From Zygnema circumcarinatum SAG 698-1b (Eukaryota; Plantae; Zygnematophyceae), in contig CM074804.1 of the NCBI GenBank assembly GCA_037447605.1, positions 1,178,001-1,242,000 on the forward strand: a stretch of DNA of 64,000 bases, written 5' to 3'. Position 1 is the first letter of the stretch; every line of letters starts with the position of its first letter. This document shows, piece by piece, positions 2,580 to 39,082 of this stretch. The notes below the pieces were generated by a model that had not been told where the DNA came from, made no database searches, and saw only the letters and a list, made by a program, of their open reading frames with translations. The translations under genes were made by a program, and so were the position numbers.

Positions 2580-4729
2580 CTATTTTGGCTTATTTGCAGC
2601 GGTCAGAAGCGTGGCCAGCAGAACAATGCCCCCTCCCACATAGCCCAGCGGCGCAATCTGCTCTCCAAGCAGAATGGATGCAAAGCCTGCTGCCCACATC
2701 GGCTGAAGAGAGTACAAAACCTGCCACACAAAATATTACTATCAGAAACTTTCCAAACGCAAAAGAGGACACTTGTCCACCTATTCAACGTTTTAGGGCT
2801 CCCATTCCAGGGTTTCCAGTTGCAGGGCTTCCCGTTGAAGGGTTTCCATTTGTAAGATTTCGGCTTTAAGGTTTCCGGTTGTAGGGTGTCCAGTTTTAAG
2901 GTTCCCAGTTTCAGAGCTCCCAGTATTAGGGTTTCCAATCTTGGGGTTCCGTAGCTCGTACCTGCGCCTCAGCCGGAGCGACCACACTCTGTCCTTTTGC
3001 CTGCGCAAGCGTGGCCCCGGCTCCACACACGACTCCCGAAACAAAAATGGCCAACAAAACTTTCCCCTCCTTCCACCCCTCCCACACGCTGTCGAGAGAG
3101 TCCCCTGCAATGCAAGGAGTAGAACGCAGCTCTGAATGGTTCTCTTGCTTTTTAGGGTTCACAGTGGCAGTTTCAAAGTTCCAGAATTCTAGAGTTTGAC
3201 GGTTTCATCTATGAGGACTCACCGCTCTCGAGTATGTTGTGGAGATCTGCTCCCATAACAAGTGTAGCTAAGGAGAGGGCCACCGTCATATTGGCTGTCG
3301 AGAGCTGCACAGCCGGAACCTTCTTGGCGTGCACGCCCAAACGGAATGTGGTGAGAGCATAGAACACAGCAGCAGCCAGAATGGCCGAGTCGCCCAAAAG
3401 GGATGAATCCACAAGACACATGGCGCCTCTGCCAACCAATCCGCAGTCAGCACGTGAAGTTATGAACCAAAGTAAAGGGAACCAAAGAGAAAGGTGACGT
3501 GGCCAACAGGTGGATGGCATGCTCAGTTAAGGACACTAAGGAGGAGTGTAGGTTTTCCTTTAGACTTTAGAGTAGTCTATACTGAAAACAAGAATACTAG
3601 AGGCCTCCTCCTCCTATCCCCCTTATGTCGTTTCCCCTTCCTCTCACCCTCACTCTATCCCTCCCCCCCACTCTCTATCGTTTTCCCTGCAGCCCTATCT
3701 CTGTACTTGATGCACACAAGGCTCCAGTTCATGTAAAGCTCCCATTCATCAGACGTTAACAACCCGCAGCCCAACCCAACCCACCCAGTTTTCACGCTAT
3801 CCTATCCCAAAGAGGCGTTTTGCGAGCACACCTACTGTTGGATGCGAGGCATTCGGTGACAACTCACGTACACATGGCCGCGGTGTTTACAGGGTCTGCC
3901 ACATCGGCCATCATCATTTCCGCCATGGCAGCGCTGCCTCCTACATCCATGACATCATCATCAACATGATCTCCTCCTCCATCGCCCCCCAGGTTCGAAG
4001 AGAAGGTCAGCAGCACAATTCCGCCGAGAGCCAATGCAGCTGCCGCCCATGTTGAAGCCGCAATTTCATCTCCAGAAAAGGAGGCCATTAAAGGTACGAG
4101 AATGCTCTTCAGTTGCAGTTCAAACCCGCCCCGGGTCGCGCTCGTGTACTCTAACCCTACAGTCTGGCCCACACCTTCAAAAAACTTCACATTCAGATTG
4201 CAGTAACCAGAGCTACCTAGTATATCTCGCACCTCAGGCATGCGAATTGCATACTTAGGTTCCGGTTTGAGTCCTCATACGTTATCCAGTCTCGGTAGAT
4301 ATCCAAGGATGTCGCATAGTGGAACTGGCTCGACACAAAACATTATCTAAAGCGTTACATTTCAAGAGGATTTTGAAACATTCTCCGTAAGCTTCCTTTT
4401 TCTCTGACCTGACAAGTTGTACCCATGAAAGTCCACAACCCAATTTCCGCTCCGGCGAGCCACACCGCCTTGTCATTCACCCAACTCCTCGCCTTCTCCA
4501 CATATTGCGCGGAGGCTTCTGCGCTATGAGATGACGGGGATGAAGATGAGGCTTGCTGTCGCTGCAAGAGCAGCAGGAAAAGGAAAGTTGCTACAGAAAA
4601 AGCTGCACCAGAAATCCAGAATACAGATGATGGTTAATTGCTCGATCGGTCGCTCGGCAGATGCACTTGGAAACGCCCCACGGAGAGAGCGAGAGAGAGC
4701 GAGAGAGAGCGAGAGAGAGCGAGAGAGAA

Positions 4730-5924: not shown

Positions 5925-6075
5925 ACAGTACCGTATAATCCTGTACAGTTCCGTGCCGTGCCGTACAGTGCCGTACTTTCGTACGGTCCAAAGGAGCAAG
6001 GCAATCGTACGGTCGTTCTGTGCGTTTCCGTACGCTTTCGTACGAGATTTCCGGGATGAAACTCAGCCGTACGAT
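5925..6075. promoter_or_regulatory. Dense (C)GTAC array upstream of the EamA gene
   Basis: 9 GTAC cores in ~150 bp, mostly CCGTAC/TCGTAC. Confidence 0.5.
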
Positions 6076-6582: not shown

Positions 6583-8713
6583 TCAAGAAGGCTCCTCCTT
6601 TTGTTGAGGCGTGGGCCGAACCATCAAGTACAGGGCGAGCCCAAAAAAGGGAACATAACGAACCTTTTCCAAAAACCCTCCAACAAACCCCCCCTCGTCT
6701 CCCTCAGCGCTGCCCCGCAGATTGTCGCCAATGAGCCACGCTTGGAAGAAGGCGTACAGGACCACATCAAAGAGGAAGGCGTACGCCACGCGATCTGCGG
6801 AGACATAGTCGATGAAGTACTGCCACCTGTCTTGTAATCCTCCAAACCCGCCCTCCGGTCGACCCCCAACAAACCACGAGAGCGAAACGAGGCCAACGAC
6901 AAACCCAACGGCTCCGAACACTTTGGCATTTGCAGCGAGGCTTTGGGTGTAGCCCCGCTCGAGGGAAGAGAGCAGGCTGAAGGGAGGGGGAGGGGGAGGG
7001 GGAGGAGGGGGAGAGGGGGCTCGCTTGGGGGGCAATGGCTGAAGGCGCAATGCCATGTAAGGGATGAGAAACACTGCACGCCCCAGTGGTTACCGGAGTC
7101 AGCTTCGAGGAGGGAGGGGNNNNNNNNNNGGAGGGAGGGAGGGAGGGAGGGAGGAAGGAGGGAGGGAGGGAGAGAGAGAGAGTTCATTTTTAAATTTTGT
7201 TTTTTTTTTTGGACAGAAAACTAAAGAGGTGGTTTTGCTTAGTAGCTTGTGGACCCAGCACGAAGACACGAGAAGGGTCTTTTTCCATCCATGGAAAAGG
7301 TTTCAAGGGACTGAAAAAGTACCGTTGGTAAGAAACATTTGCGCGCTCCACAGAAGAGCAACAGAGCCCCCCCAACGCTCGCGCTTACTGTCCGTAGCGA
7401 GCAACGGAGCAAACATAAAGCTCCATGCGTTGATGAGGTTGAAGAGGCTCTCTGATGTCTGCATCTTCTCAAACCCATCTCCCAGCCCTTAGATACCACA
7501 ATTTCCAAGCTGAGCAAGGCGGGTGGCAAAGAGGGGAAGTAAGGGAGAAAGGAAGGCACATAACTTTCCAACCACTTTTTTTTTTTTTTTAATCACTTAT
7601 CACTCACCGGATGAACTATAGGAGCCTGCATGTAATCCACCCCCACTGCATATCTCACCCATCCCAAAGGACAAATCAGAAAATTGCAAGAGGAGAGGGA
7701 GGAGGGCATGGAAAGAACAGCAGAGAAGCGTGGACTGAGGTAGGGAGAGTGAGGCAGAAGAGAGGGAGCGAGAGATTGATGAGCAGAAGTGGGAAGATCA
7801 GAGGAAATGGGGGGGCCGATAAATGTGAGGAGGGAAGGAGAGCAACAGAGAGGACAGCAATGGAGAGGGTGGGCGAGAGATAAGGAGGGGATATTAATGC
7901 AAAACAAAGGAACTCACGTGAATTAGCCGCGGGCAGGATAAAAAAGAAATTAAGAGAAAGGTCCAATAAGTCACTTATAGTTTCCGGTTTGATTGCCCAA
8001 ACAGGATCTCCCTGGAGAGGCCCCACCACCGAAAAAAAAAATCCATATATGAAACTGAAACTGGAAACTGAAATATTGAAACTGAAACTTGAACTGAAAC
8101 TTGAACTGAAACTGGAAGCAGACTCCGAAGTTGAATTTCTGTGTTCCGTTTCAGCTACGCCACAAATAGACCACATTGCAGGTTTAGCATCATTTGGGTC
8201 TAAGGCCTTCCTATCCTAAGCATGCCTAAAAACGAGAGAGTGATGGGAAGGTAAGGAAACGGATTGCATGAGGAAGAGGATGAGAGCGAGAGAGTGAAAA
8301 AAAGGTCGTAGGGAGAGAGACAAGAGGAGAGGTACCGGAGCATAGGGCAGCAAAAAGAGCCAGAGAGAGTAAGCTGCGTAGACCCCCCACAGCCCTGCTC
8401 GCAGCCCGCCCTCCGCATCCTCCTGCCCTCCTTCCCCCGGCTCCGCCTCTGCCCTTGCAGGGAATAGGGCTCCACGATTTAGGGATAGACTGTTTGAAAC
8501 AGCAGGCCGAGAGAAAGGGAACAGGGGGGCACGTCGGAGAGAAGAAACGCTGCCGAAAGCCTCAGCTTTTTCAGGGTTCAGAATTCTCTGGGAAAATGCA
8601 GGAGTAGCAGAGCGGAGAGAGCAGATGAGGGAGGGTGCGGGAGGAGAATGGCGGGCGGGGAGAGAGGGCTGCGACCATGGACCCGCTGAGAGGAGAGGGG
8701 AGACTACCGCCAT
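6583..8713 (-). CDS. Conserved plant multi-pass membrane protein with transit-peptide-like N-terminus (resembles Arabidopsis At2g04360 family); 5 exons
   Basis: Spliced reading: MAVVSPLL..LWLFLLPYAP | GDPVWAIKPETISDLLDLSLNFFFILPAANS | VGVDYMQAPIVHP | TSESLFNLINAWSFMFAPLLATDSKRERWGGSVALLWSAQMFLTN | VFLIPYMALRL..DRVAYAFLFDVVLYAFFQAWLIGDNL..YVPFFGLALYL*. GT-AG junctions at ~8336, ~8013/7920, ~7650/7610, ~7460/7325, 7073. Confidence 0.85.
7120..7129. other. Assembly gap (10 N) within a GGAG repeat
   Basis: N run in the sequence. Confidence 1.
8052..8115 (+). repeat. (GAAACT)-like hexamer repeat, intronic
   Basis: gaaactgaaactggaaactgaaatattgaaactgaaacttgaactgaaacttgaactgaaactg. Confidence 0.8.
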
Positions 8714-9261: not shown

Positions 9262-12200
9262 ATGGATTCCCCTTCTGAATTTAGCGCTGGCAAAGAAGGG
9301 AAAGTGCGTTTAACGAAAAGACGGAGGGGCTCACGGAGGAGCTCTGCCTCCTCATCAAAGGACCTTTCAGGGACCGTCCTGCAGGCCGTGGCTGAAGGCA
9401 AGCCAGTCCTCACATAAATTGACCTCCTTCTTTGCTTTTAGGATTTCCAGTTCTATAGTTTCCATGTTTAGTTTTTCCTTTTGCTCCCCTTTGTTTTTTT
9501 TTTTTCCTTACTGTTGCTGTACCGTGTGTCAGTGCCACTTCTGCAGCCAAACGCACTCGACTGTGGTCGTGGAGTCCTATTTGTAGAGTGTCCGTTGCCA
9601 GAATTTCCTCCCGTTCCCCTTCTCCCGGCTAACCCTGATGTCAGCAGCAGGCTTGCTTATCAGCTCCAACATGCCTTCCAAATAAATAGGTTTCCCTTTT
9701 GGGATTCTCTCGTCAAACCGTGGCTTCATACCTGAAAATCCTGCACTGCATGTCTACGCATGTGCAGGCGTTTTTCCTGCCGGAGGTCCCATCGGCGCAG
9801 AGAAGTATTGTTCCGCGATTGAGAGCCCACCCCCTCATCAAGTTCCTCTACCTAGTGTGAATATCATTCCTGAACGTTCTCGAGACTCGTATCTGCAGAA
9901 GACTCTCTTTGGAGACCGAACGCCACCACCAAAAACTTGCACCTCTGAAAAATCTACACCTTCGATATCTTCAGCTTCACCTCCTGCGTGTTCAGATGCC
10001 CTTCCTTCAAGTGCGTGTCAAGTGCCGACTTTTCCGACTCCGACTTCAATTTTAGCATCTTCACATTCTCCTTCTTCGATCACAGAACCGGTAAAACCTC
10101 CTACTTATGAAAATGGTCGTCGGACTTCTCCGCCAACTGCTAAGCCCCAAGCACTTCTCAACGTTTCCCTTCTCAGTGCAGCTCTTAGTCGAAAAGAGTT
10201 TCAGTCTTCAAAGGAAGTCGGGGCGAATTCGCTCCCACCAACCAAGGTAGTCGATAAGCTGCCTATGTTAGATATATACTCTACTACTCATAAAGGAAGC
10301 GTTCCTTCACAACCTTCCTTTAGGAAGGAACTGAATGTGCCGCAAGGGGTCATTTTTGAGCACCCTCTGCCACATAAGGAGGCAACTTTACTTCTTCCAT
10401 CTCCTCAGCCGGATCCCTCTTGTAATATTTTCTCCAAAAAGCAGCAGAAGCATCGGAATTTTGACAGGAAGTCGGATCCACATGTGCCAATTTCCGTCAG
10501 CAGTCCTATTAACGTTATTTCCAACGCCCCTCCGACTAGTCCGGAAACCCCGCTACACGAGGCAGATTGTAAAATATCTTCTTTACCGAAGTCTTCTCCC
10601 AAATCGCTACCTCAATATGATGGCGTTCGGAAAGCCGATTCGGGACGAAAGTCTATTTTTCCTGACCATTTATCCGCCGCAGAAGTCAGTTCAGGGATTA
10701 AGGTATGTTTTTTTGTCCTTCAGGTGAATGTATAACACTTGGAAACGGCTCGTTCATGCCCTTACTCTTAAAGAGGGAGAGGAAGTAGTCGTAAAAAGTG
10801 TGACCAGAACTGACCCTTTTTGCTGCGCGACTGTTTTGTGTTGCAGAGTGGCCGACTTTTTCGTTCAAGTTTTCGAGTGAATGCGTATAATCGATTTGAG
10901 GTACTGCATGAGAAGGGGCATGGGATTTTGGAGGTTGCGATGATGAGAATGTTGATATGTTGATGACAGACCTGGAGAATGTGCGCTTTAGGAAGTTGTT
11001 GCGCAAGATTCGCATTTTTTAGTGTTTGGGTTGCTCGCCTGAGTTAAATCCAGTTAAATCCTGTTCTTCTCATTTCCCCCTTTTTTTTTCTTCATCATTT
11101 CTGTGGTGGTTGGGGATTGGGCGTGCTCGTAGGCATACGTAACTTTGGAGGGCCTCGCCATCGATGTGCTGATATTTGGAAACACGGCTCAAAACAGAGC
11201 GGTAAGCATGTGCAGTAAGGGGTTTAGCGCACCATCATGTTCTTTCACTGCTTATGGATTTTGTGTCAGATTAAGGCGGTCTTTCTGTGAGTGTTCAGTT
11301 TTAATTGTTTTCTTCTCGATTTTGCCTCCGCGATTGGATGCAGATTGAGGGTGACATTGTCGCCATTGAAATTGATCCCCACCACGTGTGGCCCAAGGTG
11401 AAGGGTGCGAAGAAAGGGAAAGAATACAACGATCTCAATGGGGTTCAGTTAAAGAAATTTGAAAGACTCTCCTTGGAGGAAATGGAGCCGGAAACGGAGA
11501 ATGCGAATGGTTTTGCTGCAGCTTCGGCAGGAGGTGAAGGAGAGCAGCAGCAGGAAGTGCAAGCAGGAGTTCACATCCCTAACTTATCCGAGTCGGAATG
11601 GGGGACTCCCTTCAATTCAGAACCCGACTCTTTCTCGGAGGGTAGCCCGCTTTTGTCTCGCTTTCATTGTAGTCAACAAAGCAAAGATGAATCCAGATTA
11701 CGAGGGGGGAAAGTAAGCAGCATTGGATTGAACGTTGGAAGGGAAGCGGAGAATGGGACAGAGGGGAGGGATGAAGTTGGTATTGGTAACAAAGAAGAGG
11801 GGAAGAATGTGAAGGCCTCCATTGTAGAAGCCGTACTTAAAGATTCATCAAAGCGGCCGTCCGGAAGAGTGGTTGCCATATTGGAACCTTCGCAAAGACG
11901 GGAGACTTTAGTGGGATTCCTTGAACTGCAAGAACGGAAGAGGGATAAGAAAGTGAAGGAGGACAAGGAGAAGAAGAAGAAAAAGGGCAAGGAGGTGTCT
12001 GAGGGGGCAGGTAAGGGCATTCATGGCACTCCTTTGAAGAAAGTCGATGCAGATTCACCTTCCTTTACGCAGCTTTTTTAAGTAAAGAAGGACCTCCTTT
12101 TGTTGGCATCTTCAATTTTTTTGTTTCTTGTCATATCTTTCAAACCTTATTCCAACTCGCAACGCCATTCATGCAGGCGCTTTTTCGAATTCCTCGGAAG

Positions 12201-15200
12201 AAGAATCCAGTCATATTTCGCAATTAAATTGGCCGTTCGATGGCTCTGTCTTATTTGTGCCTGTTGATCCTCGGTTTTCGAAAATGATAGTGCATGTGAA
12301 CGGGCTCCCAGACAACATTAAGGCTCGGTTTATGGAGAATGATCCGTCGCTGGGAACGGAACTGATCGCAGCGAGAGTGGACACGTGGCGAACAACTAGC
12401 TACCTCCCACATGCTATTCTGAGGCAAAGTTTAGGGCAGGCTGGGGAGATTGAAACAGAGACAGCAGCAATTCTGTTTCAATACTCCATTCACACCTTAG
12501 AGTATCCACCTGCAGCTCTCGCATGCCTTCCACGGACTCCATGGAAAATACCTTCAGATGTAATTCGGCAGCGATGGGACCTTCGAGATCGGCTCATTTT
12601 CTCCATAGACCCACCGACAGCTCGAGACCTTGACGATGCTCTCTCCATCGAACTGCTGCCTGAGGGAAAATTCCGAGTGGGTGTTCACATTGCTGATGTG
12701 TCATACTTTGTGAAGCAGGGGACTGCTCTGGATAAAGAAGCGCGTAGGCGTTCAACAAGTGTCTATCTCATACAGCGAGTGCTGCCAATGCTTCCCTCTC
12801 TGTTGTGTGAGAAGCTCTGCAGCTTGAATCCAGGTGCAGATAGGCTCGCATTCTCTGTGGTTTGGGATATGAATTCGGAGGGGGAGGTGACAAGTCAGTG
12901 GGTCGGAAAGACGGTGATTCGGTCCGCATGTAAGCTGTCTTATGGTCACGCGCAAGAAATGATTGAAGGCAGGTTTCCTCTGGGAGAGGAGAAAGACGGA
13001 AAGGACGAGGGAGGGAGAGGGACTGGCAAAGGGCGTAAGCTTGGGAGACCTACATTGCATGGGGCATTCACGTGGGCTGATGTCAATGATACTGTTTTGG
13101 CGTTGAATAGTATTGCAAGAAAGTTGAGAGCTCGAAGGTACGCGAATGGGGCGGTGAAACTGGACAATTGTAAGCTGCTTTTCACATTAGATGCAGATGG
13201 GAATCCGGTGGAAGTGGGCCATTACAAGGGTAAGGAGGCAAATAACTTGGTGGAGGAGTTCATGCTTTTAGCGAACATGTCAGTCGCAAGAGCGATTTCT
13301 GCCGCATTTCCAAACGCTGCTCTTTTGCGTCGCCACCCAGAACCGAACGCGAGGAAGCTTAGTGAGCTTGAAGCTTGGCTTAAAAAGCAAAGCTTCGAAT
13401 TCGATGCTCGTTCTTCCGGATCGATTCAGGAAAGCTTGTTGGCTCTGCAGGATAAAACTAGTCATGATTCGGCGTTGTTTGAGATTCTTCTACTTGCAAC
13501 AATAAAGCCGATGCAGTTGGCTAAGTATTTCTCCACAGGGGAGCTTCCAGGAGCAGTGGACGAATGGGGGCACTACGCCCTTGCCACTCCCTTCTACACT
13601 CATTTCACTTCCCCTATTCGGAGATATCCTGATCTTGTTGTACATAGAACTTTGGCAGCGGTTCTGCACGCAGAGGAACTTCTGCATGCGAATAAAGTAA
13701 AAGTGATACAAATCACTGACGGTGGGGCTGTTCCGTTTCCGTTAAACGGAACTAGTTCTTCCATCTCTATACAGAGTGTCCCTGTGGGTTATTTAGGGCC
13801 GACAGGGACGCTGCAGGAGGTGATGAATGGGAAGTCGCAGAAAGGAAGGCATAAGCAGAAGGGACTTAAGAAAAAAGATCATTTGGGTATTTCAGACACA
13901 GGGGAGAACATGCGTAGTATTGAAGGGAGTAGCCGTTACTTTACAGGGCCAGAAGTGAATGTTTGTGAAGAGATGCCGGAAGAGGTGAAGAAAGCAGCAG
14001 CCGTGGCTGCAAAGGCGTACTCTCTTTTTGAGTCGGACGAACTTGCAGAAGTGGCGAAGTATTGCAACGAGCGGAAACTGGCGAGTAAGAGCGTGCAGGA
14101 AGCCTGCGATAAGATTTATCTCTGCGTTCTGCTCAAGCGCTGTAAGGTGAGCTCAAAAAAAAAAAAAAGGGAGTAAAAAAACAACAAAGAAAAACAAAAA
14201 ACTTACAAAAGAAGTTTCTAGTTGTTGGTGGGTTCTTTTTCTCCTCGGCGGCTTTTCTAGCACAGATTACAGATCGTTTACTCTCTCGGAATGAAGGCGT
14301 GCTGCAGTTTCGCTCCGTTGATCCTTTGAGAACAGTGCAGCATGGCTGCTTTCAACAGTCACGGAGACGCAGCATAGAAAAGCAAGCATGCAGTTGTAGA
14401 ATGGAAGCGCCTTTTGGAACGTTGTTCTTCTGATGATTGAGAGAAGAGAAAAAAGAGAGAGAGAGCGAGAGAAAGAGAGAGAGAGCGAGAGAGAGAGAGA
14501 GACTTGTGGGGGAGGAGGGGCTCCACAAAGCGTTTATTTATATATGGCTGCCACTCGTGCAGGGCATGTTTTCGGATGCGCGGGTGATGGGACTCGGACC
14601 CCAATTTATGACTGTGTATGTTCGGAGATTTGGGGTGAGCGACATTTCCCATTTTCCCCTCTTTCCTCTCTCTCTCTTCCTTTCTCCCTCCTCTCCTCCC
14701 CCCCCCCCCCCTTTCTCTCTCTATCTCTCTCGCTTATCCATTTTCGGTCTATATTGTAATCATATGGACATGGAACTGCTTTCTTTCTCTAACCGTTGTT
14801 TTTTTGTTCGTTTTTTTGTTTTTTTTCAGTTGGAGCGCTGCATATTTTACGCGGACATGAAGGGAGTTCAAGCCGAATGGTTTGAAACTACCGGAACTTT
14901 AGTCCTTGATCTCATTCCCGACTCAAAGAACGATCAAGTCAAGTCAAAAAAGCGCAGCAACAGGTCAAAGAAACAAACCACTCGAGGAGGGGGTGTCGAG
15001 TTCGCAGATGTCTTCAACAGATCAGAGGAAGCTTCCGAGGAGCTTCTGGCACTCCAAATGGCGTCCATGTGGCCTGATGAGGAGGGTTCAGAGCCGGATG
15101 ATGACGGGCTCGAGGGGGAGGAGGGTTCAGGGCCTGCTGAAGGGGGGTTTTCGGGGGATATGGGGAGAGAGACCGTTGTGGAGCCTGCTGTTCTTCCGTT

Positions 15201-18082: not shown

Positions 18083-18357
18083 CATTGTTGTTGAGGAGAG
18101 GGCGGTTGGGGGCCGGAGCGAGTGAGCGCAGAGGGCGATCGCGCAGGCGGAGGAGTGTCGGCGCGAGGGCAACGCGCTGTACGGACGGGGGGCCTTGGGG
18201 CCCGCGCTGGAGCAGTACGGCCGCGCGCTGCGCCTCCTCCCTGACCACGCCGAGGCCGCCGAGGCGCGCGCGGCCTGCCATGCGAACAGCGCCATCTGTC
18301 ATCTGCAATTGGTGAGCGCGCTCTCCCTCCCTCCCTCCCTCCCTCCCNNNNNNNNNN

Positions 18358-18393
<36 letters not shown>

Positions 18394-19450
18394 TTCTCCC
18401 TCCCTCGCTCCCTCGCTTGGCTCCCCCTCTCTCCCTCTTCTATGTCACCTCCCACTCTCTTTCTTTTTTCCACATCTCTCTCTCTCTCTCTCTCCCTCTC
18501 TCCCCTTTCCTTCCCACTGCTGGCCAACCGAGTACAATCAACTCATTCTCACCCTTCCTCTCCAAAAACTTCCGTCCCCGACGGAGGCAGTCAGCCACAA
18601 CTGAACCAATACTCTTCAAAAGCAAATCACTTGAGCCTTGTGCCATGGTCCTTTGTTGACCGAGGAGCTTCCTGCATGGAACGCCGTTAGGGTTTCTTGG
18701 GCATTAACTGAGAGACCATGAAGATGCGTTGCTGCAGGATGAACTTGAAGCTGCCGTGAAGGCGAGCTCTGCAGCGTTGGACCTTAAACCTGACTATGTC
18801 AAGGCGCTGCTGCGACGCGCTCAGGCGCAGGAACGGCTCGACCGCCATGAAGAAGCTCTCGCAGGTAGGGTCACTCTCGAAGGTTCTGTAGATGTAGAAG
18901 TTCAGAGCCTCATGTTTTTTAGAAAGTTAGGAGTAACTACTTTCGTGCTTGCGCTTTTTGTACTTTTTTCTGTGCAGATCTGAAGAAGGTGGTTGAGTTG
19001 GACCCCAAAGATAAGGCGGCAATTGCGTCGGTGAGGAGGTTGGAGCCGATAGTGATGGAGAAGAGGGAGAAGATGAAGGACGAGATGTTGGGTGAGTGGG
19101 GAGCCCTTCTTACATCACTCAAAAGTTTTTGGACTATCATCATCACACGTGTTTAAATTCTTCCCGACATACTCACTGCAGATTTGTAGGACGTAAACAT
19201 TCTGGATGCTTCTTAGACCCCAAGCATTCTAATTGCCAGATTCACCGCTGGATGACCTCGTTTTCAATGGTCCAAGGTGATCCTTAGCTTTGCTCCTCCG
19301 AGTTCTGATGTTGAAGTTTTGTGTCGGTCCCCAGGGAAGCTGAAAGAGCTCGGAAATTCGATCCTGGGCAACTTCGGCATGAGCGTGGACAACTTCAAGG
19401 CCGTACAGGACCCCGCCACGGGGTCCTACTCCATCAGCTTCCAGAACTGA
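17059..19450 (+). CDS. TTC1: Tetratricopeptide repeat protein 1-like co-chaperone (acidic N-terminus, 3 TPRs); 5 exons
   Basis: Exons ~17059-17436, 18131-18310, 18739-18864, 18978-19091, 19336-19450. Reads AEECRREGNALY..CHANSAICHLQL|DELEAAVKASSAALDLKPDYVKALLRRAQAQERL..|DLKKVVELDP..EKREKMKDEML|GKLKELGNSILGNFGMSVDNFKAVQDPATGSYSISFQN*. Confidence 0.93.
18050..18092 (+). repeat. (TTG)n microsatellite in TTC1 intron 1
   Basis: Direct inspection. Confidence 0.9.
18348..18357. other. Assembly gap (10 N) within a CCCT/CT repeat
   Basis: N run in the sequence. Confidence 1.
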
Positions 19451-20741
19451 CCAACCCTCCAGGGAGGCGAGGCGAGGCCCATTAGGGCGAGCAGATGGAA
19501 GGTGTTCACATGTCAAGTGTAGATAGGGCTGGGGGGGCTGCTGTGAGGCATGAACGGGAACTTGGGACCAATGTTGGGCATGTTATACATGTGGGTTATC
19601 GGGGCTCTAGCAAGGTTGTGCATGCGAGGGCTTCAGGGGCCTTTCTGCAATGCCGCATTGTTAAGGTTTAGGTTTTAACCTAGGCCTACGATTTGCCTCT
19701 GAACATTGTTCTTTCAACTCATGCACTGGGCCAACAACAGCAAGCAGACAGAAAGCCCCAAATCTGTATTGGTCTGCACAGTACGCAGTTGCAGTTTGTC
19801 GTTCTTTCTCCGTTACAGGAATAACTGTCACCCAACCGCCAATAACGGCTCCCGCCCGCGAAACCGCCAGTCAACAAGTTTCCGTTTTTCACAAAACGAC
19901 AAAATCTGCCACCCCTCAAAATTATTCACAATCATAATCCCAATTTCCGGCTGTTCAATTTCGTAGTTGTCCGTACAACCAGATGTACAGTACAGTACAC
20001 CTGGCTTCGTACAATCACTAATCCGTGCCGTTCGTACAGGTGCTCGCCGTAAAACCACAGAAATCCTCGCTTTCCGGAAAACAATCCCTTCAGGATTCTG
20101 CCCGTAACCCAAAAACGTTTCACCTGCCCGACCTACTCAAATATTGTCTGACGTGGCGCCCATCCATTGGCTTTAGTCAAGATGTGTCCATTTTCCACCT
20201 AAATAAAGGACTATTTCTGACCGCAAATTCGTCTCCATCCTTACCCGCCACCCGCCGCCGCCCCTCCGCCGTCACACGCTTCCTTTGACCGCCGCGCCGC
20301 CACGCCAGCTCGGGCCCAAACCGCCGCTTTGGGACCACTTAGGGCCCATCGGCTGACGCGGCGCGCGGCGCTGGCGCGGTCCCAGGGTGTCACCGTGGCA
20401 GGCCCTGACGTGGCGCCCGATTCTTTCCTTGTCGCGACGCGAGCCTTATCCGCAGGCCGCGCCCCGAACGACGTTATCCACATCAGATTTTATTCGGCCT
20501 GACTCAGCGCCACGCGAAGCCGCCCCACTGGTCCCTCTGTCGCACGTGCCGCCTCTCTGGGCCAATCAGCGCGTCCGACTCCGACCGGTCCGCCAATGAG
20601 AAGCCGTCGTTGCGCGTGCGCTGGCACGGAATCTTTTCTGCTGCCTTTCCTTTTCCGAGAATCCGCGGCGTGGCGGCCCCGGCGGGCGCCACGTGCCCCG
20701 GCCTCCCGCCTTGTCGGAGGGTCCCCCCCGGCCCTTTGGGG

Positions 20742-20804
20742 CCTATAAACGGCGGCGCCGGCCAACTACATTAAGACCGTCCGCACGCTTCAACTTTTAG
20801 GGTT

Positions 20805-20878
<74 letters not shown>

Positions 20879-20880
20879 AC
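20742..20880 (+). promoter_or_regulatory. TATA-like box (CTATAAA) followed by a (CT)n 5'-leader tract for the RCxWPR gene
   Basis: cctataaac at ~20742, (CT)n at ~20809-20878, then gccATGGCG at 20923. Confidence 0.55.
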
Positions 20881-20922
20881 ATTTCATCAGACGTAAGTGG
20901 AGCAGCTTGAGAAGGCGCAGCC

Positions 20923-22878
20923 ATGGCGCTGGCGGTTCACGGAAGCCACACGTGTCTGACTAGAGCTGTGCAGACGACGCCGGAGTGCATCTACGACGGG
21001 CAATCCAAAGAGCTCGCAGCCTTCACACGCAAGCAGCAGCGCCGAGTGAAGCTCTTCCTCCTGCGGGCCTCCCGACCCCTTCTGCGGAGCGCTCCCGCCC
21101 TGCAGTCCCGCACGGCCCGGCAGCCATTGGAGGGGCACGAGCAGTTGCAAGAGCAGGAGGCTCCGGGCCCTTCTGCTCCCACGGAGCCTCCCAGTGGCGA
21201 CTCGGACCCTCTCCCTCTGCACGCCCTGCAGGAGCTTGAGAGGGAGCGGGCGCGGTGGGGGAAGCAGCGCCGTCCCACTTCTCGGCCGCATACTCAGTCT
21301 CCCTCCGCCATGGATTGGATGATGATGATCTCACAGGGAGTGTCGCTGCCGCGGTACGATTGGCCCATTATCGGCCGACCTTCTAAGGAGAATGTCTCTG
21401 TCTCAGAGAGGGAGCTGTGGGGCATCATGGAGTCGCCGGAAGCTTTCGTTTTCACACCACCCAGCCCATCCGGAGAGTCGGAATCTCTAACGATCGAGAT
21501 CGACGAAGAAGAGGAACTCCTGGTTGATGCCATCCCTGCGAGTGAAGAAGACGATGAACCTGAGGCTTCGTCGTCATCTCCTTCTGTCTATCCGCGCTGC
21601 AGCTGGCCCAGAACCTCGACAGTGCAATCCATGGGGGCCTCTGTCGCCCGTGTCTCTCCCGCGCCCGCCTCTCCTGCTCCTTTGTCAAGCTTTGCTCGCT
21701 GCAACTGGCCCCGCAGCAATGCAGCTTCCTCCCCTCTTCAGATGGGCCCCAGATGTGCCTGGCCACGCCCTTCCTCCCAGACATCTCCATCCTCTGAAGT
21801 GCCTCATTCGACGAAATTGACAACTTCGGGATCTCCATCTGACACCATCTTCGAGCAACTAAAGGACCGGCAGCCGCGCCAAGCCGACGTCGACTCCCTA
21901 GAGAGACTCTTTGTGGGAGAGTCCAACATAGGGGCCCCGCATTGTGCTTGGCCTCGGGTCCATATCCCAAAGCCGTCCGATTCAACCGCTGCTCCGCCTG
22001 CTGCTGCGCGCTGCGCCTGGCCCAGGAATGGAGCTGCTCTTCCAATGCAACTTTCTCCCGTGATTCCATCCGAAGGGGAGACGGTTTTGGCTGCTCGCTG
22101 TGCATGGCCGCGAGTGCTTCCAACAGCTGCCAGGTGTGCTTGGCCCCGGAGCAAGGGACCTATTGCTGCACCGGAGGCCATGTCGCCGAGGGTAGGGGGA
22201 GAGGGAGCGAGGTGTGCTTGGCCCCGGAAGGGGGGGGTAGTCGGTAACGAGAGGGTGGAGGAGATGGCTGTGCTTGGGTCTGGGGCATCCTCAAGCGCAG
22301 TGGGAGAAGTGGCAGATTCTGTGTCTGCAGAATTTGAAGCTTATGCGAATGGGTGTGGTTCGACCTTTACTGATATTGCAATTGCCGCTGAGGGATGTTA
22401 CCCTCGTTGTGAATGGCCGCGAGCTTCGAGGACAGAGAGGGAGGGGGTGAGAGCAGGTGTGGGCAGGGAGGAAGCCAGGCAGTTGGTGATTGCTGGTGCG
22501 CTTTCAGCTGTGGTTGGAGAGGGGAGATGGGCAGGGGGTGAGGGAGAGGTAGAGATGGGAGCGGCCGCTGGACCCGTGTCAGCTGTTGCTGCAGTGACTG
22601 GAGCCATGCATGCTGCTACGGATTCAGTGAAGCAGGCTCAGGAAGCGATGGCGAATATGGGGGCGAGGTGTGTGTGGCCAAGGGGGATGAAGGGAGTCCC
22701 TTCTATCGCAGGTGGAGAGGTGGCCCCTGCGTTGGGCCCAAGATGCGCGTATCCGAAAGTGACAGGGAGTGGGGGTAGAGGGCCGGAGGAGGGAGAGGGA
22801 GAGAGCAGGAAGGAGGATGTGACCATGGGAGGAGCACGATGCCCGTGGCCTCGGCAGAGCAAGACGCTCAATGTGTAG
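20923..22878 (+). CDS. Intronless 651-aa low-complexity protein with 12 [RH]Cx[WY]P[RK] motifs; function unknown
   Basis: Long ORF with gccATGGCG start. The motif is conserved at protein level despite varied codons, and spacers are S/P/A/G/E-rich. Confidence 0.9.
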   Translation: MALAVHGSHTCLTRAVQTTPECIYDGQSKELAAFTRKQQRRVKLFLLRASRPLLRSAPALQSRTARQPLEGHEQLQEQEAPGPSAPTEPPSGDSDPLPLHALQELERERARWGKQRRPTSRPHTQSPSAMDWMMMISQGVSLPRYDWPIIGRPSKENVSVSERELWGIMESPEAFVFTPPSPSGESESLTIEIDEEEELLVDAIPASEEDDEPEASSSSPSVYPRCSWPRTSTVQSMGASVARVSPAPASPAPLSSFARCNWPRSNAASSPLQMGPRCAWPRPSSQTSPSSEVPHSTKLTTSGSPSDTIFEQLKDRQPRQADVDSLERLFVGESNIGAPHCAWPRVHIPKPSDSTAAPPAAARCAWPRNGAALPMQLSPVIPSEGETVLAARCAWPRVLPTAARCAWPRSKGPIAAPEAMSPRVGGEGARCAWPRKGGVVGNERVEEMAVLGSGASSSAVGEVADSVSAEFEAYANGCGSTFTDIAIAAEGCYPRCEWPRASRTEREGVRAGVGREEARQLVIAGALSAVVGEGRWAGGEGEVEMGAAAGPVSAVAAVTGAMHAATDSVKQAQEAMANMGARCVWPRGMKGVPSIAGGEVAPALGPRCAYPKVTGSGGRGPEEGEGESRKEDVTMGGARCPWPRQSKTLNV

Positions 22879-24439
22879 TGGTAGATGGGTTTTTTGTCTG
22901 GAGATGCCGAGAGACACTCTTCGTGTCTAAGTGTACCGGCGCGGTTTTGGATGTATATAGAAAGTGTATATATATGTGTGTACAGCATGCGTAGAGTGTG
23001 CAGGTTCTGGGATCTATTTTTGAAAGGGGGGAGGGATTTGGTGTGGCAAGAGAAAAGGCTGCTCTGACAGGGAACCTGCAGGAGCTGAGTGATTGATACG
23101 TTGAATAAAAAGTGAGGTGCGCGCTGCAGAGTGAGATAGGAGAAGACGCAGAGGTGCAGACAGCGGAGAGATGCAGATGTGCGGATAGGTTGAATGCATG
23201 TATGTGACCGAGCACACGATGAATGGGAACTGAGCTGGTTCTTGACTTTCCTTTAATTCCAGATTTTGCCAAGTAATGTGTTCTTATTTCATATGCATGA
23301 TGTGCATGTCTGGGCCCTTGGTGTTTTTATGTGAAGAGATGGCATGGCATGGTGTATATGAAGCCGGCAAATAGTTTGAAGTGCTCATGGAATCAAAGGG
23401 ACATGTCCGTAAAACATGTTTGCAGCAGGAGAAACTGGAGAGGAGCCACTGAAGCGGAACGAAGTAAAGTATTGATTTGTAAGGTTGAAGGAGAGAGCAG
23501 GCAGCACCTCATGTGCAGGGGATGAGTGCTTGCATGCATGCATGTTGGGGGTGCATTGACAGCATTGTGCACATGACCCGTTTCTATGTAATCCTCGGAA
23601 ACGTCCAGTTCCCCCTCCCGCAATCCGCATGCATCTGCCACCTCCGCCATGTTCCATCGCCAATTACATAATTCCAGTTCTTGTACCGCACAGGCGAAAC
23701 ACAGAACATGCAAATATTTCCTGGAAAAGAATCACAACCCAACGGCTCGCCCGTGGAAGAATCCATCCCGGCGCTCCCTCCCTGCCGGCAGCACCCACCC
23801 ACCCATGCATGCATCCATCATCCCTTCCATGTATCCAGCCGTGCATGCACCTTCTCATCCCATCCATGCATATCCATGCATCCTTGCGCCCTGGGATGCC
23901 GTGAAACCGAACGTTTGAGAACAAAAGAATTTAAATATTTTTCCGCTCTTATCTTCTTTCTATTGTGCTTAGGTCCTTTGCGACCAGTCCCTCGTGGTTC
24001 CACATCCTGCTTTTGTCCATGTACATTTGATGGCCTCGCCATCATAAGTTCAATGAAATTTTCTCCTTCTCTCTTAGTTAAATATTTTGGCTTCTCCAAA
24101 AAGAACTTTCAAAACCAGTTTCTGAAGAAAAAACATTCTATTTGTGAACACGATTCATTTAAAAAAATGAGAAATGAATTTATAATTTTTTTCTCAACAC
24201 AATTTTTACTAAAATTGCACGGAACCAAAGTGGAGAAATCGGAATCCACAAGTACGGCCGAACGTGCTGTCTTTGAACTTTTTCCTGAAACCTTTTCGCT
24301 TTCTTAAATCGAAAAAATTTGGACCTCGCGTGTTCATAGTTCAACCCCACTCAACAAGATTGAGAATGAGAAATTCAGTAAACTCGTTTTCTCATTTTCT
24401 CAACCACTTCGGTTTCACGATACGCCTCCCCGCCGACGC

Positions 24440-24850
24440 CGCCGCCCCGTCGCGTACGGAGACGGTACGGTACGGCCGAGGGAAAACAGGGACGATGATG
24501 TACGGCACCGGATTTTTAGTTTTCAGTACGGACGGATATTCCAGCGCGGGGGGGCGACAGGCACTGTACGGCACGCCGCCAGGTCGTTTGGCGGCTATCG
24601 GGGGAGGCGAATCCAAGTGCACCGACATGCAGGGGTCGTACGGCAGACTTTCTGCGAAACGAGTACGGAGCCGCAGATACTTTTTTCAGGGGAAACGTTT
24701 TAGGTGGACCGTACGGTACGGGCAGTCCCTTGACCACGTGTCAGGGTACTTTGGAAGGAGTCAAACTTGACAAGGAGACCGCCAACGAAAAGCCGCCACG
24801 TGTCAAGATATTGGCAAACATCAATCACAGTGGTCTGGCCGTACTGTGGG
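24440..24850. promoter_or_regulatory. Second dense GTAC(GG) array, upstream of ABCG paralog 1
   Basis: At least 11 GTAC cores, e.g. cgtacggagacggtacggtacgg and ccgtacggtacgg. Confidence 0.45.
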
Positions 24851-25975
24851 CCTCACGTGGGACGGGCTGGAGACAGGTTGTCGTTTGCGGCCTGCATTAG
24901 AATATCGTCATATCGACTGCATATCGGTGACGGCCGGCGAAGTTCCCGCCCCTCAGAGCTGCTCCGCGGGGGAGACGCCTCCTTTCGGAGTCACGTTTCG
25001 CCGATCGTGACCGATACGGGTGCGATATGGCGATTTGACACTTTTAAAACTCACAAACGACAAGGAATCGTTCCTGCTGGTCGCATTTTTTTGGACATGC
25101 ACACGTGGCGCCGTACGATTGGTCAAATGTCTTAAACCATTATGAGTGGCCGTACACTGTTCCTCTCTTTTTTTTGATTTTTAAATAAAAAAATATTTTT
25201 ACAATCGATGTCAGCAGGAAACAAACCGCATGCTTGTGACGTCCATAAGTTCATGAATGACGTCATTCTCTACGCCTTCCGGGCCCCTTCCCGGAGCCTG
25301 CGCGCCTCCTTCGCAAAATTTGCACAGGACGGGCACGTGGCATCCTCCGATAGGATACATCACCTGTTGACGTGAACAATACGTCATCCACGGCGGCAGG
25401 GTCCCGCGAAGCCGGTGGCGGACCTTCACAGAAATTCCAATCCTGCGGCGAAATTTTAGGACGAATTCGGGCAGATGAAAAACGTTCGTCCGCTGCCCTC
25501 CAGCCACAAATTGCCGTCCTTTCGGGCAGATTTGAAAGTTTCGTCTCGGGGAAAGGGTAAAACGGCTGCCCAAAAACTTCCGCCTTGCACGGCGCCCTCT
25601 GCGCGCGCTCCGCCACGTGGCGGCGGCAGCGCCGAGGCTCACGACGGAAATGCTCCGTACAGGGGATCCGCCACCGCTTCGTGACGTGACGTGACATCAC
25701 AATGTCGGTGGCTCGCTGGCAGGCGGCGCCTAATGAGACCTGACAGGCGCCGCTTTATAGCGAAACCGGAGGTAGGGTTGGGGAGAGAGTGAGAGAGAGG
25801 GAGAGACCGAGAGGGAGACTGAGAAGGAGAGGGAGGGAGCGAAAGAGAGAGAGGAGAGGGAGAGAGGAGGCAAGTGAGGCGAAGGGAGAGAGGAGGCAAG
25901 AGGGGCGAAGGGAGAGAGGAGGCAAGAGGGGCGAAGGGTGAGAGGAAGTGAGAGTGGAAGAGGAAGTTTCCGGCC

Positions 25976-35992: not shown

Positions 35993-38900
35993 TCATCGCG
36001 ACACTGCATGGCCGAGACCCCAGTAGTCTAATGCCAGCAAACCAGCCCCCTGTTCATCCACTCCCCCTGCTATTCCGCCTGCCAAGTCGTCATATTCCGA
36101 AGCCATGCCCACATTGGAGGGTGGGAGCAGAACCCCCCCCAGCGCCATTAGCCGCTGGTCGACTCGCTGCATGTCCTCCTCGGCAGCATCCGGAGCCATT
36201 TGGCGGAGGGGAGACATGGGGTTAGCAGGGGTATTAGGTACCATTCGGGAGGAAAAAAGCGACCCATAGTCTGCGATTCCCATCATGGACCCTGCACCTG
36301 GCCCGCTATGAGGACCAGGACCATTCCCTCCGTTGCTGCCTGCTTCAACCGCAGAATTGCCTGGATTACCTCCCCCTCCTAAATACCCTCCTCCTGGCCC
36401 ACCTCCCCCTGTGCCGTGCCCCCCACTGCTCTCAGCCCATGGCAGAAAACCTTCACCTCCTCGGCTATGGCTATCCACATTGGGCACTCGGCTGTTCCCC
36501 GGCTGCTGCTGCCGCTGCTGTGTCTGCTGATGTTGCTGATGGTGTTGTGAATGCTGCTGCTGCTGCTGATGATGTTGCTGCTGCTGTTGGTAATGCTGCT
36601 GTTGCTGATGCTGCTGTTGCTGATGATGTTGCTGTTGCTGCTGATGATGTTGTTGCTGTTGATGATGTTGCCGCTGTTCATCTGAGCTGTTCCCTGGTTT
36701 CATCCCATCTTCCAACAGTTCTCCTCGTTGCACCAACTGCTGTCCGAGCTGAGTTTGCAGCATCATAAGCTGCGCTGCCTGCTGAGCTTGCCCCCACAAA
36801 TCCTGCTGACTCCCCTGCCCTGCTTGACCTCCTGCTGCATCTACCACCATCCTGGGGATGCCCACATTCGGCCATACAGGGGCCAACACCGGCCCCCCCA
36901 TATTTGACGGACGCGCAAGATTAAGAGGCCAATTCAATGCCTGCAAATTTGCCAAGGAAAGCTGCGCAATAGGCCATGTAGCAGGAGCTAATCCGAGGTT
37001 CCATGCCGGCCGTTGCGGCACAGTTTGCTGTTCCTGCGTCTGACTTTGCAGAGCCGTTCCTTGCTGTGCTGCAGCAGCTGAAGACAGTCCACTCCCTCCG
37101 ACGGGTCCCCTCTCTACCCCCGGCGATCCATGGCTGCCGATGACACCCGGCGCTGCTCCTGCCATGGCTGCATTTGCAAGAAGGAGAGGAAGCGGAGGGA
37201 GAAGGGAGATGCTGCTCTGCGAGTTCTGAACTGCAGTTGAGGGTGCTCCTCCTGCGGCTGATGCAGGGCCTCCCTCAGGCATTCCAAGAGGCATTAAAGG
37301 TAGAGTGGCTTGGGCAGGCGGGAGGTTTCTCCCTTCCTGCCACGTTCCCTTAGCCGATCGGCTCTTGCTGAAGGAGGGATTCGCACGTAGATCTATTGTT
37401 GGCATAATTGCAGAGGATGAAGGGATAGAGGCTTGCTGAGGGGAGGAAAGGGTGAGGACAGGAAGGGAGGCCTTTTGTAGGGGGGACTCCGCTTCAGGGG
37501 AGGAGGGAGGAGAAATTTGCTGCGCTCCTGCTCCCCCATGAGCTCCTGCAGGCTGACCTGCAGGGGCTCCATCTGCTGAGGGGGGAAGGCCCGGTAAAAA
37601 CATGCCCATATTTCCCTGCAACCTGCAAGAATAGAAGCACGTTTTGCGTTTTTCCGGCTTTAAAGGTATACCAAAAGACCTTTACTGGCCCCCTGCACTC
37701 TGCCCCTCCCTTCTTGTCGAAAACACGTTCCATCCCTCAAAAAAAGCGATCCCCCAAAACAAAACAGACAAGAAAAACAGCAGAAAAGGTACCTGTCCGG
37801 GAAATTCAAATACGCTTTACTCCCGCGCAGACGGTACGCTGCAACATCGTACGCTTCTGCTGCATCCTCCGCATGATCGAAAGTCCCCAGCCATATCCGG
37901 CTCCTTTTCCCCGGCTCTCTTATCTCCGAAACCCACTTTCCCCATTTCCGCAGTCTCACCCCCTTATATCTTTTGGCGCGCGTCGTTCCTGCCAAGGGGT
38001 CTACTCCCGTAGTCTGCGCTACTATCGCAGAGCCCCTCTTTCCCGCCTCCTCACTACTCCCTCCTCCACCACCTGCTCCTCCTCCTCCTTGCATAGTCGC
38101 GGATCTCTCCCTCTCTTGCACTGCTCCCCCCCCTTCAGCCATGGCTTCCGCTTTACTCCTTCCCCCCCCTAGACCCTCCCCTCCCTCTCCATTTCCTCCT
38201 CCGTACCCATCCCCTCCGTACCTCGCTCCCCCTCCCTTCTCCGACGCTCCCTCTCCCTCCTTCCCCCCATATCCTCCTATCATTCCAAAAGGGAGCGAGG
38301 TGGGCGAATGCGCAGCCTCCTGCCCGCCGTTTTGATGGTTGGCAAGGCCCTGTGAACCCCATGGATGAGCTCCATCGGCGCCTTCCTGGATGTTTCTGAG
38401 TCCTCCTTGAGCACCCGCCATGGGGCCAAATAGGGGCCGAGCGACGTCCATAAACTCTCCCGCATCCTCTCCATCCTCCCCCTCCTCTCCCTCCCCGTCT
38501 CCTTCCTCATCTCCCTCTCCGTCTACCTCTCCCTCTCCCTCTCCCTCTCCCTCTCCCTCTCCTCCTCCCTCCCCATCTCCCTCTCCCTCTCCTTCTCTCT
38601 CCTCGTCTGAGTCTGCAGGGCGCGATCTTTTTAAGAGGAGAAGCTCCACCGCCGTTACGTTCACTCCATCCACCTCGTCTACATGTCGCTTTCGAGGTTC
38701 CGTTCCGTCGTTCCCGCCGCTTCGCTGCTCCTCCTTCTGCCACGCTGGGGCGCGCTGCGGCTTCTCCCACTGCGACTGCCACTCCGCCCCGCCCTCGTCT
38801 CCCATTTTCCGCTCCCTCCTGCCATCGCTCTTCCCAGCATCTCCCTCTTCCTCTCCCTCTCCCTCGTCCTCCCCTTCCCCCTCTCCCTCTTCTCCCTCTC

Positions 38901-38997
38901 CCTCCCCATCCTCCCTCTCCTCCCTATCCTCCGCCTCCCTCTCCGGAAACAACATCTGCGCCCGCCCACCCTTGCCCCCCTCCCCTCCCTCCCCCAT
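35993..38997 (-). CDS. AP2/ERF transcription factor, DREB-type, ~944 aa with acidic/Gly-rich N-terminus and poly-Q/H C-terminus; 2 exons (start uncertain)
   Basis: AP2 domain [58 protein letters not shown], with V14/E19 as in DREB. Intron 37792-37623 joins in phase to ORF 37621-35993. Confidence 0.9.
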
Positions 38998-39082
38998 CCC
39001 ACCCTCAGCACGTCCCCCTCTTCCCGCCACGCGTCCCTCCCTCCCTCACCTCTTCCGCCCCTACTCCCTCCCCTCCTCCCCT

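Follow-up and report, generated by a model that had tools for sequence, protein, structure and literature searches.

We analyzed a 64,000-nucleotide (nt) stretch of the genome of the streptophyte alga Zygnema circumcarinatum SAG 698-1b (GenBank assembly GCA_037447605.1, contig CM074804.1, positions 1,178,001 to 1,242,000 of the forward strand; hereafter the window), and we show that it carries a transcribed, intronless gene at 20923–22878 for a largely disordered protein of 651 amino acids (aa), in which twelve copies of a short motif built around R-C-x-W-P-R are conserved. This protein belongs to a previously undescribed family, here called the RCxWPR-repeat family, which extends from the alga Chlorokybus to ferns. 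By a modest measure, we think it probable that the protein is a multivalent docking scaffold of this streptophyte family and that it acts in the plastid; scaffolds of the sticker-and-spacer type are an already known kind of protein.

The coding sequence (20923–22878, + strand) is complete, comprising 651 codons plus a stop and opening with an ATG, and its limits are supported by the list of open reading frames (ORFs), by colinear RNA contigs and by homologues that match in frame. Each of four sequencing runs yielded a single colinear contig (Logan) that extended from 20887–20892 to 23158–23256 with zero joints. Because depth was zero in both flanks (19788–20757 and 23280–23861), the four runs behave as RNA libraries, and the jointless contigs therefore indicate a real intronless mRNA of approximately 2.3–2.4 kilobases (kb), in agreement with the initial annotation of this DNA, which had called the gene intronless from its letters alone. 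The 5′ untranslated region (UTR; 20887–20922, + strand) measures 36 nt and contains no upstream ATG, the contigs starting at 20887, 20888 or 20892, and the 3′ UTR (22879–23256, + strand) is approximately 280–380 nt long, with an AATAAA at 23104 and contig ends at 23158, 23230, 23235 and 23256. Transcription was seen in all four runs, with word depths of 187–528 versus 12–327 for the upstream neighbour (at or above it); word depth is a poor measure of expression and was not used to rank it.

A regular-expression scan of the protein for [RH]Cx[WY]P[RK] returned exactly twelve copies, namely RCSWPR (starting at residue 225), RCNWPR (259), RCAWPR (277), HCAWPR (340), RCAWPR four more times (363, 392, 404 and 430), RCEWPR (495), RCVWPR (582), RCAYPK (607) and RCPWPR (639), together with a degenerate RYDWP at residues 143–147. 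On the + strand of the window, the six-residue cores start at 21595, 21697, 21751, 21940, 22009, 22096, 22132, 22210, 22405, 22666, 22741 and 22837. The copies stand in the order in which the initial annotation had listed them, and the degenerate copy and the stop that follows the final motif by 7 aa are also as it described. Gaps between motifs span 6–81 aa, with 5 of the 11 spacers shorter than 20 aa. Among 20,000 composition-preserving shuffles, nine contained one copy and none contained two, and no further copy was found in the other frames and places of the 64-kb window. The codons vary among the copies (CGC TGC, AGA TGT, AGG TGT, CGT TGT and CGA TGC), and repeats at the DNA level are restricted to 18–40 nt around the motif cores, with no long repeats. 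For these reasons we regard the peptide as the conserved unit, and the earlier proposal that selection acts on the peptide, the array not being a DNA repeat, was upheld.

To assess folding, we used an AlphaFold2 model built on an alignment of 15 sequences. The mean predicted local distance difference test (pLDDT) score was 46, with 523 of the 651 residues (80%) below 50, and the predicted template modelling (pTM) score was 0.25. Helices were limited to residues 99–115, 129–137 and 182–201, and pLDDT exceeded 70 solely in the part that holds the first two of these. The array of twelve [G/Y/A][P/A][R/H]CxWP[R/K] motifs (21589–22854, + strand; residues 223–644) had pLDDT below 50 and no secondary structure. 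This region has an isoelectric point (pI) of 8.5 and a net charge of +5, while the whole protein has a pI of 6.0 (5.3 from residue 60 onward) and an acidic N-terminal half. Repeat regions are basic in nearly all family members (pI 8.5–10.4), the arrays of the relatives lying at 9–10.4.

Conservation of the motif and range of the family

A word-indexed protein search returned 14 relatives, and an exhaustive phmmer scan of 1.84 billion representative proteins returned 13. Those with a named source come from several strains of Closterium, from Coleochaete scutata (P0003) and from Chlorokybus atmophyticus (P0019), the remainder being transcriptome transcripts or metagenome contigs, and in the source databases the relatives are labelled "unnamed" or "hypothetical". 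These hosts support the streptophyte-algal origin that had been proposed for the DNA. One relative, P0016, lies on an 11.6-kb genomic contig (L003), where it is again a single ORF, beside an AP2/B3 gene. Another, of 581 aa and with 13 motif copies, is a single ORF at 2804–4549 of the metagenome scaffold GROS21-1 (ENA; L004), and because this is an environmental contig, the family also occurs in uncultured algae. No match to the window protein or ten relatives was found in Pfam, and no chain in the PDB matched by sequence at E values up to 1. In the ESM Atlas, no score exceeded 0.6 with either the complete window protein or the C-terminal half of the Chlorokybus protein as query. Among the papers searched, the motif strings retrieved only three chance strings in unrelated biomedical and veterinary papers, and the accessions of the relatives retrieved no match. 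That no known family is recognizable, as the initial annotation had judged, thus held in Pfam, the PDB and the papers searched.

From 151 motif copies in 15 proteins (the window protein and 14 relatives), we derived an eight-residue consensus, [G/Y/A][P/A][R/H]-C-x-W-P-[R/K], in which x is mostly A. The part R/H-C-x-W-P-R/K is fixed across the 151 copies; G is the usual residue at position −2, A being less frequent there and F or Y present in certain copies, and either P or A occupies position −1. The flanks are variable and rich in A, S and P. Among Closterium orthologues, 93–100% of columns were identical within motifs versus 62–76% in ungapped spacers (Fisher p = 4e-7, 7e-5 and 7e-4). Across ten algal members the spacers span 6–82 aa, with a median of 26. 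Thus the sticker-and-spacer build put forward in the initial annotation found support, since the motifs are conserved, the spacers drift and the protein is predicted to be disordered.

Outside the array, the family alignment revealed a shared basic block, RK..R..KLF.L.A.RPLL, which in the window protein is FTRKQQRRVKLFLLRASRPLL (21022–21084, + strand; residues 34–54), and a conserved N-terminal module (N-module) of the form DPLPLxA, helix, P..SAL..(V/I)DW, then YDWP. In the window protein, the N-module (21205–21366, + strand; residues 95–148) reads DPLPLHA, a helix, a helix with MDW, and YDWP, as defined by the alignment and the AlphaFold2 helices. Here D95, P96, P98, L99, A101 and W132 are nearly invariant and W147 is invariant. 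Within the array, an element LERLF (21898–21912, + strand; residues 326–330) stands just before the GAPHCAWPR copy, and has the counterparts LERTF, LERMF, FERMY, LERLF and LERIF among P0001, P0002, P0003, P0013 and P0015. The Chlorokybus protein P0019 (Chrsp17S02746) has four RCxWPR copies and, at residues ~270–400, a second repeat, QLERVRVRGV(V/S)QQ, present about five times, plus a helical C-terminal region; this second repeat was seen in none of the other family sequences that we read.

Four members (P0003, P0013, P0014 and P0018) end in a conserved segment, RR(M/V)L(A/G)TSV(G/C)(L/I)...N...GG. A search with one of these tail-bearers, P0018, returned proteins of the ferns Adiantum capillus-veneris, A. 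nelumboides and Ceratopteris richardii along with unnamed transcripts, at 35–48% identity and E values of 1e-47 to 1e-103. The fern-type proteins carry 3–5 motif copies (YPRCAWPR, GPHCAWPR, YP[HR]SAWPR and GG[AP]RCAWPR), compared with 7–14 in algal members, and have a conserved N-module of their own and the same tail as P0018. The AlphaFold2 model of a fern-type protein was disordered save for short helices, including one in the tail (pTM 0.17). When aligned using hhalign, the fern tail matched the tail of Coleochaete and P0013 with a probability of 93.5% (E = 2.2e-7), and because P0003, from Coleochaete, and P0013 combine such a fern-like tail with a window-type N-module, we place the fern and window types in one family. 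With members in Chlorokybus, Coleochaete, Closterium and ferns, this family is old. We also considered whether the tail is a transmembrane helix; three tail-bearers gave Kyte-Doolittle means over 19 residues of 1.4–1.6 and two more gave values below 1.1, which is borderline or lower, and we therefore describe it as a conserved hydrophobic or amphipathic helix.

Taken together, membership is defined by at least three copies of [G/Y/A][P/A][R/H][C/S]xWP[R/K], disorder, and a DPLPLxA...DW N-module and/or an RRxLxTSVGL tail. The window protein has twelve copies and the N-module and lacks the tail, and translation of its 3′ UTR in three frames disclosed no tail-like or frame-shifted tail segment. 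In six tail-less members, the window protein and five others, the final motif lies 2–11 aa from the C-terminus. No seed-plant, bryophyte or chlorophyte protein was among the named matches of the phmmer, word-indexed and tail-bearer searches. Nor was there a named match from other streptophyte algae with public proteomes, including Klebsormidium and Mesostigma, a result that annotation gaps could explain, in that unannotated intronless genes like that of the window could hide in these algae.

Candidate functions and partners

Because a conserved eight-residue unit recurs in 3–14 copies between drifting, disordered spacers, the family bears the signature of a flexible scaffold that carries short linear docking motifs, and the fixation of the motif from Chlorokybus to ferns in otherwise drifting proteins points to a conserved binding partner. 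Under this docking-scaffold reading, each of the twelve copies would be a short linear docking site for one and the same folded partner, and twelve such sites on flexible, fast-evolving spacers could bind many partner molecules or many sites of an oligomeric partner. The window protein, having no membrane tail, would then cluster or cross-link its partner, most likely in the plastid stroma. The ancestral form, kept in Coleochaete and ferns, would have had fewer or similar numbers of copies plus the C-terminal hydrophobic helix, which may anchor the partner to some membrane or surface, and the window protein would be a tail-less, high-valency derivative.

A plastid location is suggested by the N-termini of the family, which begin with MA and are mostly rich in Ala and Ser and poor in acidic residues. 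In 12 of 16 members the first 50 residues hold 0–3 D/E, versus 4–7 expected from the remainder of each protein. Such N-termini fit plastid transit peptides and would direct these proteins to the plastid. The presequence-like region of the window protein (20923–21204, + strand; residues 1–94) likewise starts with MA and has few acidic and many basic residues.

Several observations weigh against a plastid docking scaffold. By composition, the N-terminus of the window protein itself appears weakly transit-peptide-like, much as the initial annotation had held in finding no clear transit peptide there, and the basic block at residues 34–54 could be a nuclear or other signal. These features would suit a nuclear or cytosolic multivalent adaptor, comparable to the GW-repeat Argonaute hooks or the DPW/DPF endocytic adaptors, which are hub proteins with Trp motifs, and the conserved RKQQRRVK within the block (residues 36–43) resembles a nuclear localisation signal. 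However, most relatives have textbook-looking Ala/Ser-rich, acid-poor N-termini beginning with MA, the window protein contains two WG dipeptides and no GW, short of the GW/WG pattern of Argonaute hooks, and no folded adaptor domain was found using Pfam or AlphaFold2, such that we consider an adaptor outside the plastid quite improbable. The bond between the algal and fern types is also narrow, running through motif and tail only: the two kinds of N-module did not align significantly with hhalign (E = 0.11), and we claim no homology there. More generally, docking, plastid location and cross-linking are all functional points that we infer from sequence.

The motif Cys is a further point on the opposing side, as its near-invariance hints at chemistry beyond plain docking. 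At WP[RK] sites of the family, the residue two positions before the Trp is Cys in 177 of 186 cases (95%) and Ser in 4 of 186, and these proteins have hardly any Cys outside the motifs. Such retention suggests that the Cys matters and, at this evolutionary depth, exceeds the conservation predicted for a purely steric role. It would be expected if the proteins were thiol-based scaffolds, in which the Cys does the work by redox-switched cross-linking through disulfides, by binding metal or by acylation, the remainder of the motif tuning its reactivity. Nevertheless, most fern-type members have Ser instead of Cys in one of their conserved motifs (YP[HR]SAWPR; YPHSVWPR in P0030), as do P0002, P0013 and P0017 in their first copy, with the remainder of the motif retained. 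Each motif offers one Cys, with neither a His nor another Cys fixed as its partner, and thiol chemistry leaves the invariant Trp, Pro and Arg unexplained. We consequently regard a thiol-based scaffold as very improbable. The initial annotation had offered a Cys-based redox, metal or acylation scaffold as its alternative, and the Ser substitutions weaken the pure redox or metal form of it; a docking site could still be tuned by the redox state of its motif Cys.

If the motifs are docking sites, Rubisco is the best named candidate for their partner in algae, although our data give it no advantage over other abundant proteins of the plastid. The initial annotation had raised the possibility of a pyrenoid Rubisco linker. 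Under this reading, the motifs would bind RbcS or RbcL, and the protein would condense Rubisco to form the pyrenoid matrix in streptophyte algae; relatives with a tail would then tether this matrix to membranes, in the manner of the Chlamydomonas proteins with a Rubisco-binding motif. As a disordered protein with many Trp/Arg stickers, the window protein does parallel EPYC1, the Chlamydomonas motif and PYCO1. Hallmarks of such linkers are present in the window protein, which is mostly disordered and has at least four spaced stickers (twelve), with C, W, P and R/K invariant. Chlorokybus, Coleochaete and Closterium, all of the named algal hosts, bear pyrenoids, and copy numbers are higher in the algal members (7–14) than in ferns (3–5). 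Because its spacing is irregular, linker searches based on tandem repeats would have missed the family, its array escaping repeat finders tuned to regular periods of 40–80 aa. No Rubisco linker or pyrenoid scaffold is reported for streptophyte algae in an April 2026 review (PMC13655443), and our literature searches found no such linker. We also considered a hornwort "EPYC1 analog", but this was chosen as a regular tandem repeat with a period of 40–80, and nothing ties it to the RCxWPR family.

Other results argue against this proposal. Adiantum and Ceratopteris are ferns and have no pyrenoid. Linkers are expected only where pyrenoids exist, yet these ferns have motif-bearing relatives that the tail links to the algal proteins, and because pyrenoid-less ferns keep the motif, its partner is not pyrenoid-specific and persists without a pyrenoid. 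EPYC1 and CsLinker are strongly basic, whereas the window protein has a pI of 6.0 overall and 5.3 from residue 60, with an acidic N-terminal half, although its repeat region (pI 8.5) and those of its relatives (pI 9–10.4) are basic. Several of its spacers, at 6–20 aa, fall below the 20–120 aa that FLIPPer uses for cross-linking, and neither the Chlamydomonas motif nor that of PYCO1 was matched in its sequence. Klebsormidium and Mesostigma also bear pyrenoids, and the missing named matches in these and other pyrenoid-bearing streptophyte algae count against a linker as well, subject to the annotation gaps noted above. In two of the four runs, RNA depth was near that of an ordinary neighbour, with the proviso that depth measures expression poorly. 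Thus the pyrenoid-linker reading is not supported in the form in which it was first stated, being weakened by the fern relatives and, less clearly, by the whole-protein pI, and we consider it a possible but unlikely reading.

A Rubisco-tethering ancestor is possible and would be compatible with ferns, Rubisco being present there. One could accordingly imagine, as a speculative and rather unlikely scheme, that GPRCxWPR arose as an early-streptophyte Rubisco sticker, that tail-bearing proteins tether Rubisco to plastid membranes, a role kept in ferns, and that tail-less, high-copy proteins are the pyrenoid matrix linkers of those algae that stand nearest to land plants, possibly switched by Cys redox state. 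Were the window protein a linker, it would be an especially useful component for building pyrenoids into plants, since the Rubisco of these algae is the closest to that of crops.

Other features of the window

Directly 5′ of the transcript start lies a (CT)n microsatellite (20808–20878, no strand assigned), read in the sequence. Further upstream, a promoter region (20148–20695, + strand) contains two identical CTGACGTGGCGCCC boxes, at 20148–20161 and 20405–20418, and a CACGTG G-box at 20690–20695; these elements resemble bZIP/light-response sites and may have a regulatory role. The hexamer CCGTAC, with the GTAC core of SBP-box type, occurs 46 times in the window versus 9.5 expected, a total that no shuffle reached, and forms clusters of 6 sites in 112 nt (5961–6072) and 14 in approximately 600 nt (24252–24844). 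A GTAC-rich patch of about seven cores in 70 nt (19968–20040) sits between the 3′ end of the upstream gene and the 651-aa gene, approximately 850–900 nt 5′ of the transcript start, and in the proximal promoter itself CCGTAC/GTAC sites were not clustered. An Rfam search of 19000–25500 gave no match. Downstream of the gene, approximately 100 nt at 23939–24043 reached an RNA word depth of up to 2339, with many contigs continuing into unrelated sequence on both sides and no Rfam match, and it is probably a short dispersed repeat that many transcripts contain.

Elsewhere in the window, a long exon at 12128–14176 (+ strand) encodes an RNB-domain (Dis3/RNase II-type) exoribonuclease with a CSD2 domain (Pfam E = 1e-103), and an ORF at 37660–39030 (− strand) encodes an AP2 DNA-binding domain (Pfam E = 8e-14). 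The presence of AP2-type neighbours both here and on contig L003 (AP2/B3) may be coincidence. Two assembly gaps of 10 N each were read in the sequence at 7119–7129 and 18347–18357.

Comparison with known systems

A close likeness in sticker design is to PYCO1, the pyrenoid linker of the diatom Phaeodactylum, a disordered protein with unevenly spaced KWSP[R/Q]GGS stickers in which the Trp is essential (PMC10288592). Both proteins are disordered and carry short linear stickers at uneven spacing, with Trp beside Pro and Arg. They share no homology, however: the register is C-x-W-P-R here and W-S-P-R in PYCO1, KWSP[RQ] was absent from the window protein by regular expression, and PYCO1 has an additional Tyr sticker and a motif free of Cys. 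Moreover, the PYCO1 motif was found in no other Phaeodactylum protein, whereas the RCxWPR motif spans a family that reaches ferns.

EPYC1 likewise combines disorder with a multivalent sticker of W plus R/K. Its stickers are helical and its repeats regular, at ~60 aa, whereas the window protein has irregular spacers, no helix predicted in the array and a pI of 6.0. In Chlamydomonas, the Rubisco-binding motif [D/N]W[R/K]xx[L/I/V/A] is common to proteins with different ends, both soluble and tethered (PMC10927497, PMC13655443); a regular expression for this motif found none in the window protein or any family member. AaPPAP28, a candidate linker of chlorarachniophytes, is disordered and contains 90 copies of [D/E]xPKS (PMC10927497), and thus resembles the window protein in its very short repeated motif, short irregular spacers and disorder. 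The motifs are unrelated, and PPAP28 is species-specific, whereas the RCxWPR family is conserved across streptophytes.

For the tail-bearing subfamily, a different arrangement offers the model. Tic62 and TROL are plastid proteins of vascular plants in which repeated Pro-rich motifs dock FNR, an abundant stromal enzyme, and a membrane anchor holds this enzyme in place. Their motif differs from RCxWPR, and the family is without their folded dehydrogenase or rhodanese domain; it is the combination of repeated docking motifs with a membrane anchor that the tail-bearing proteins may share with Tic62 and TROL.

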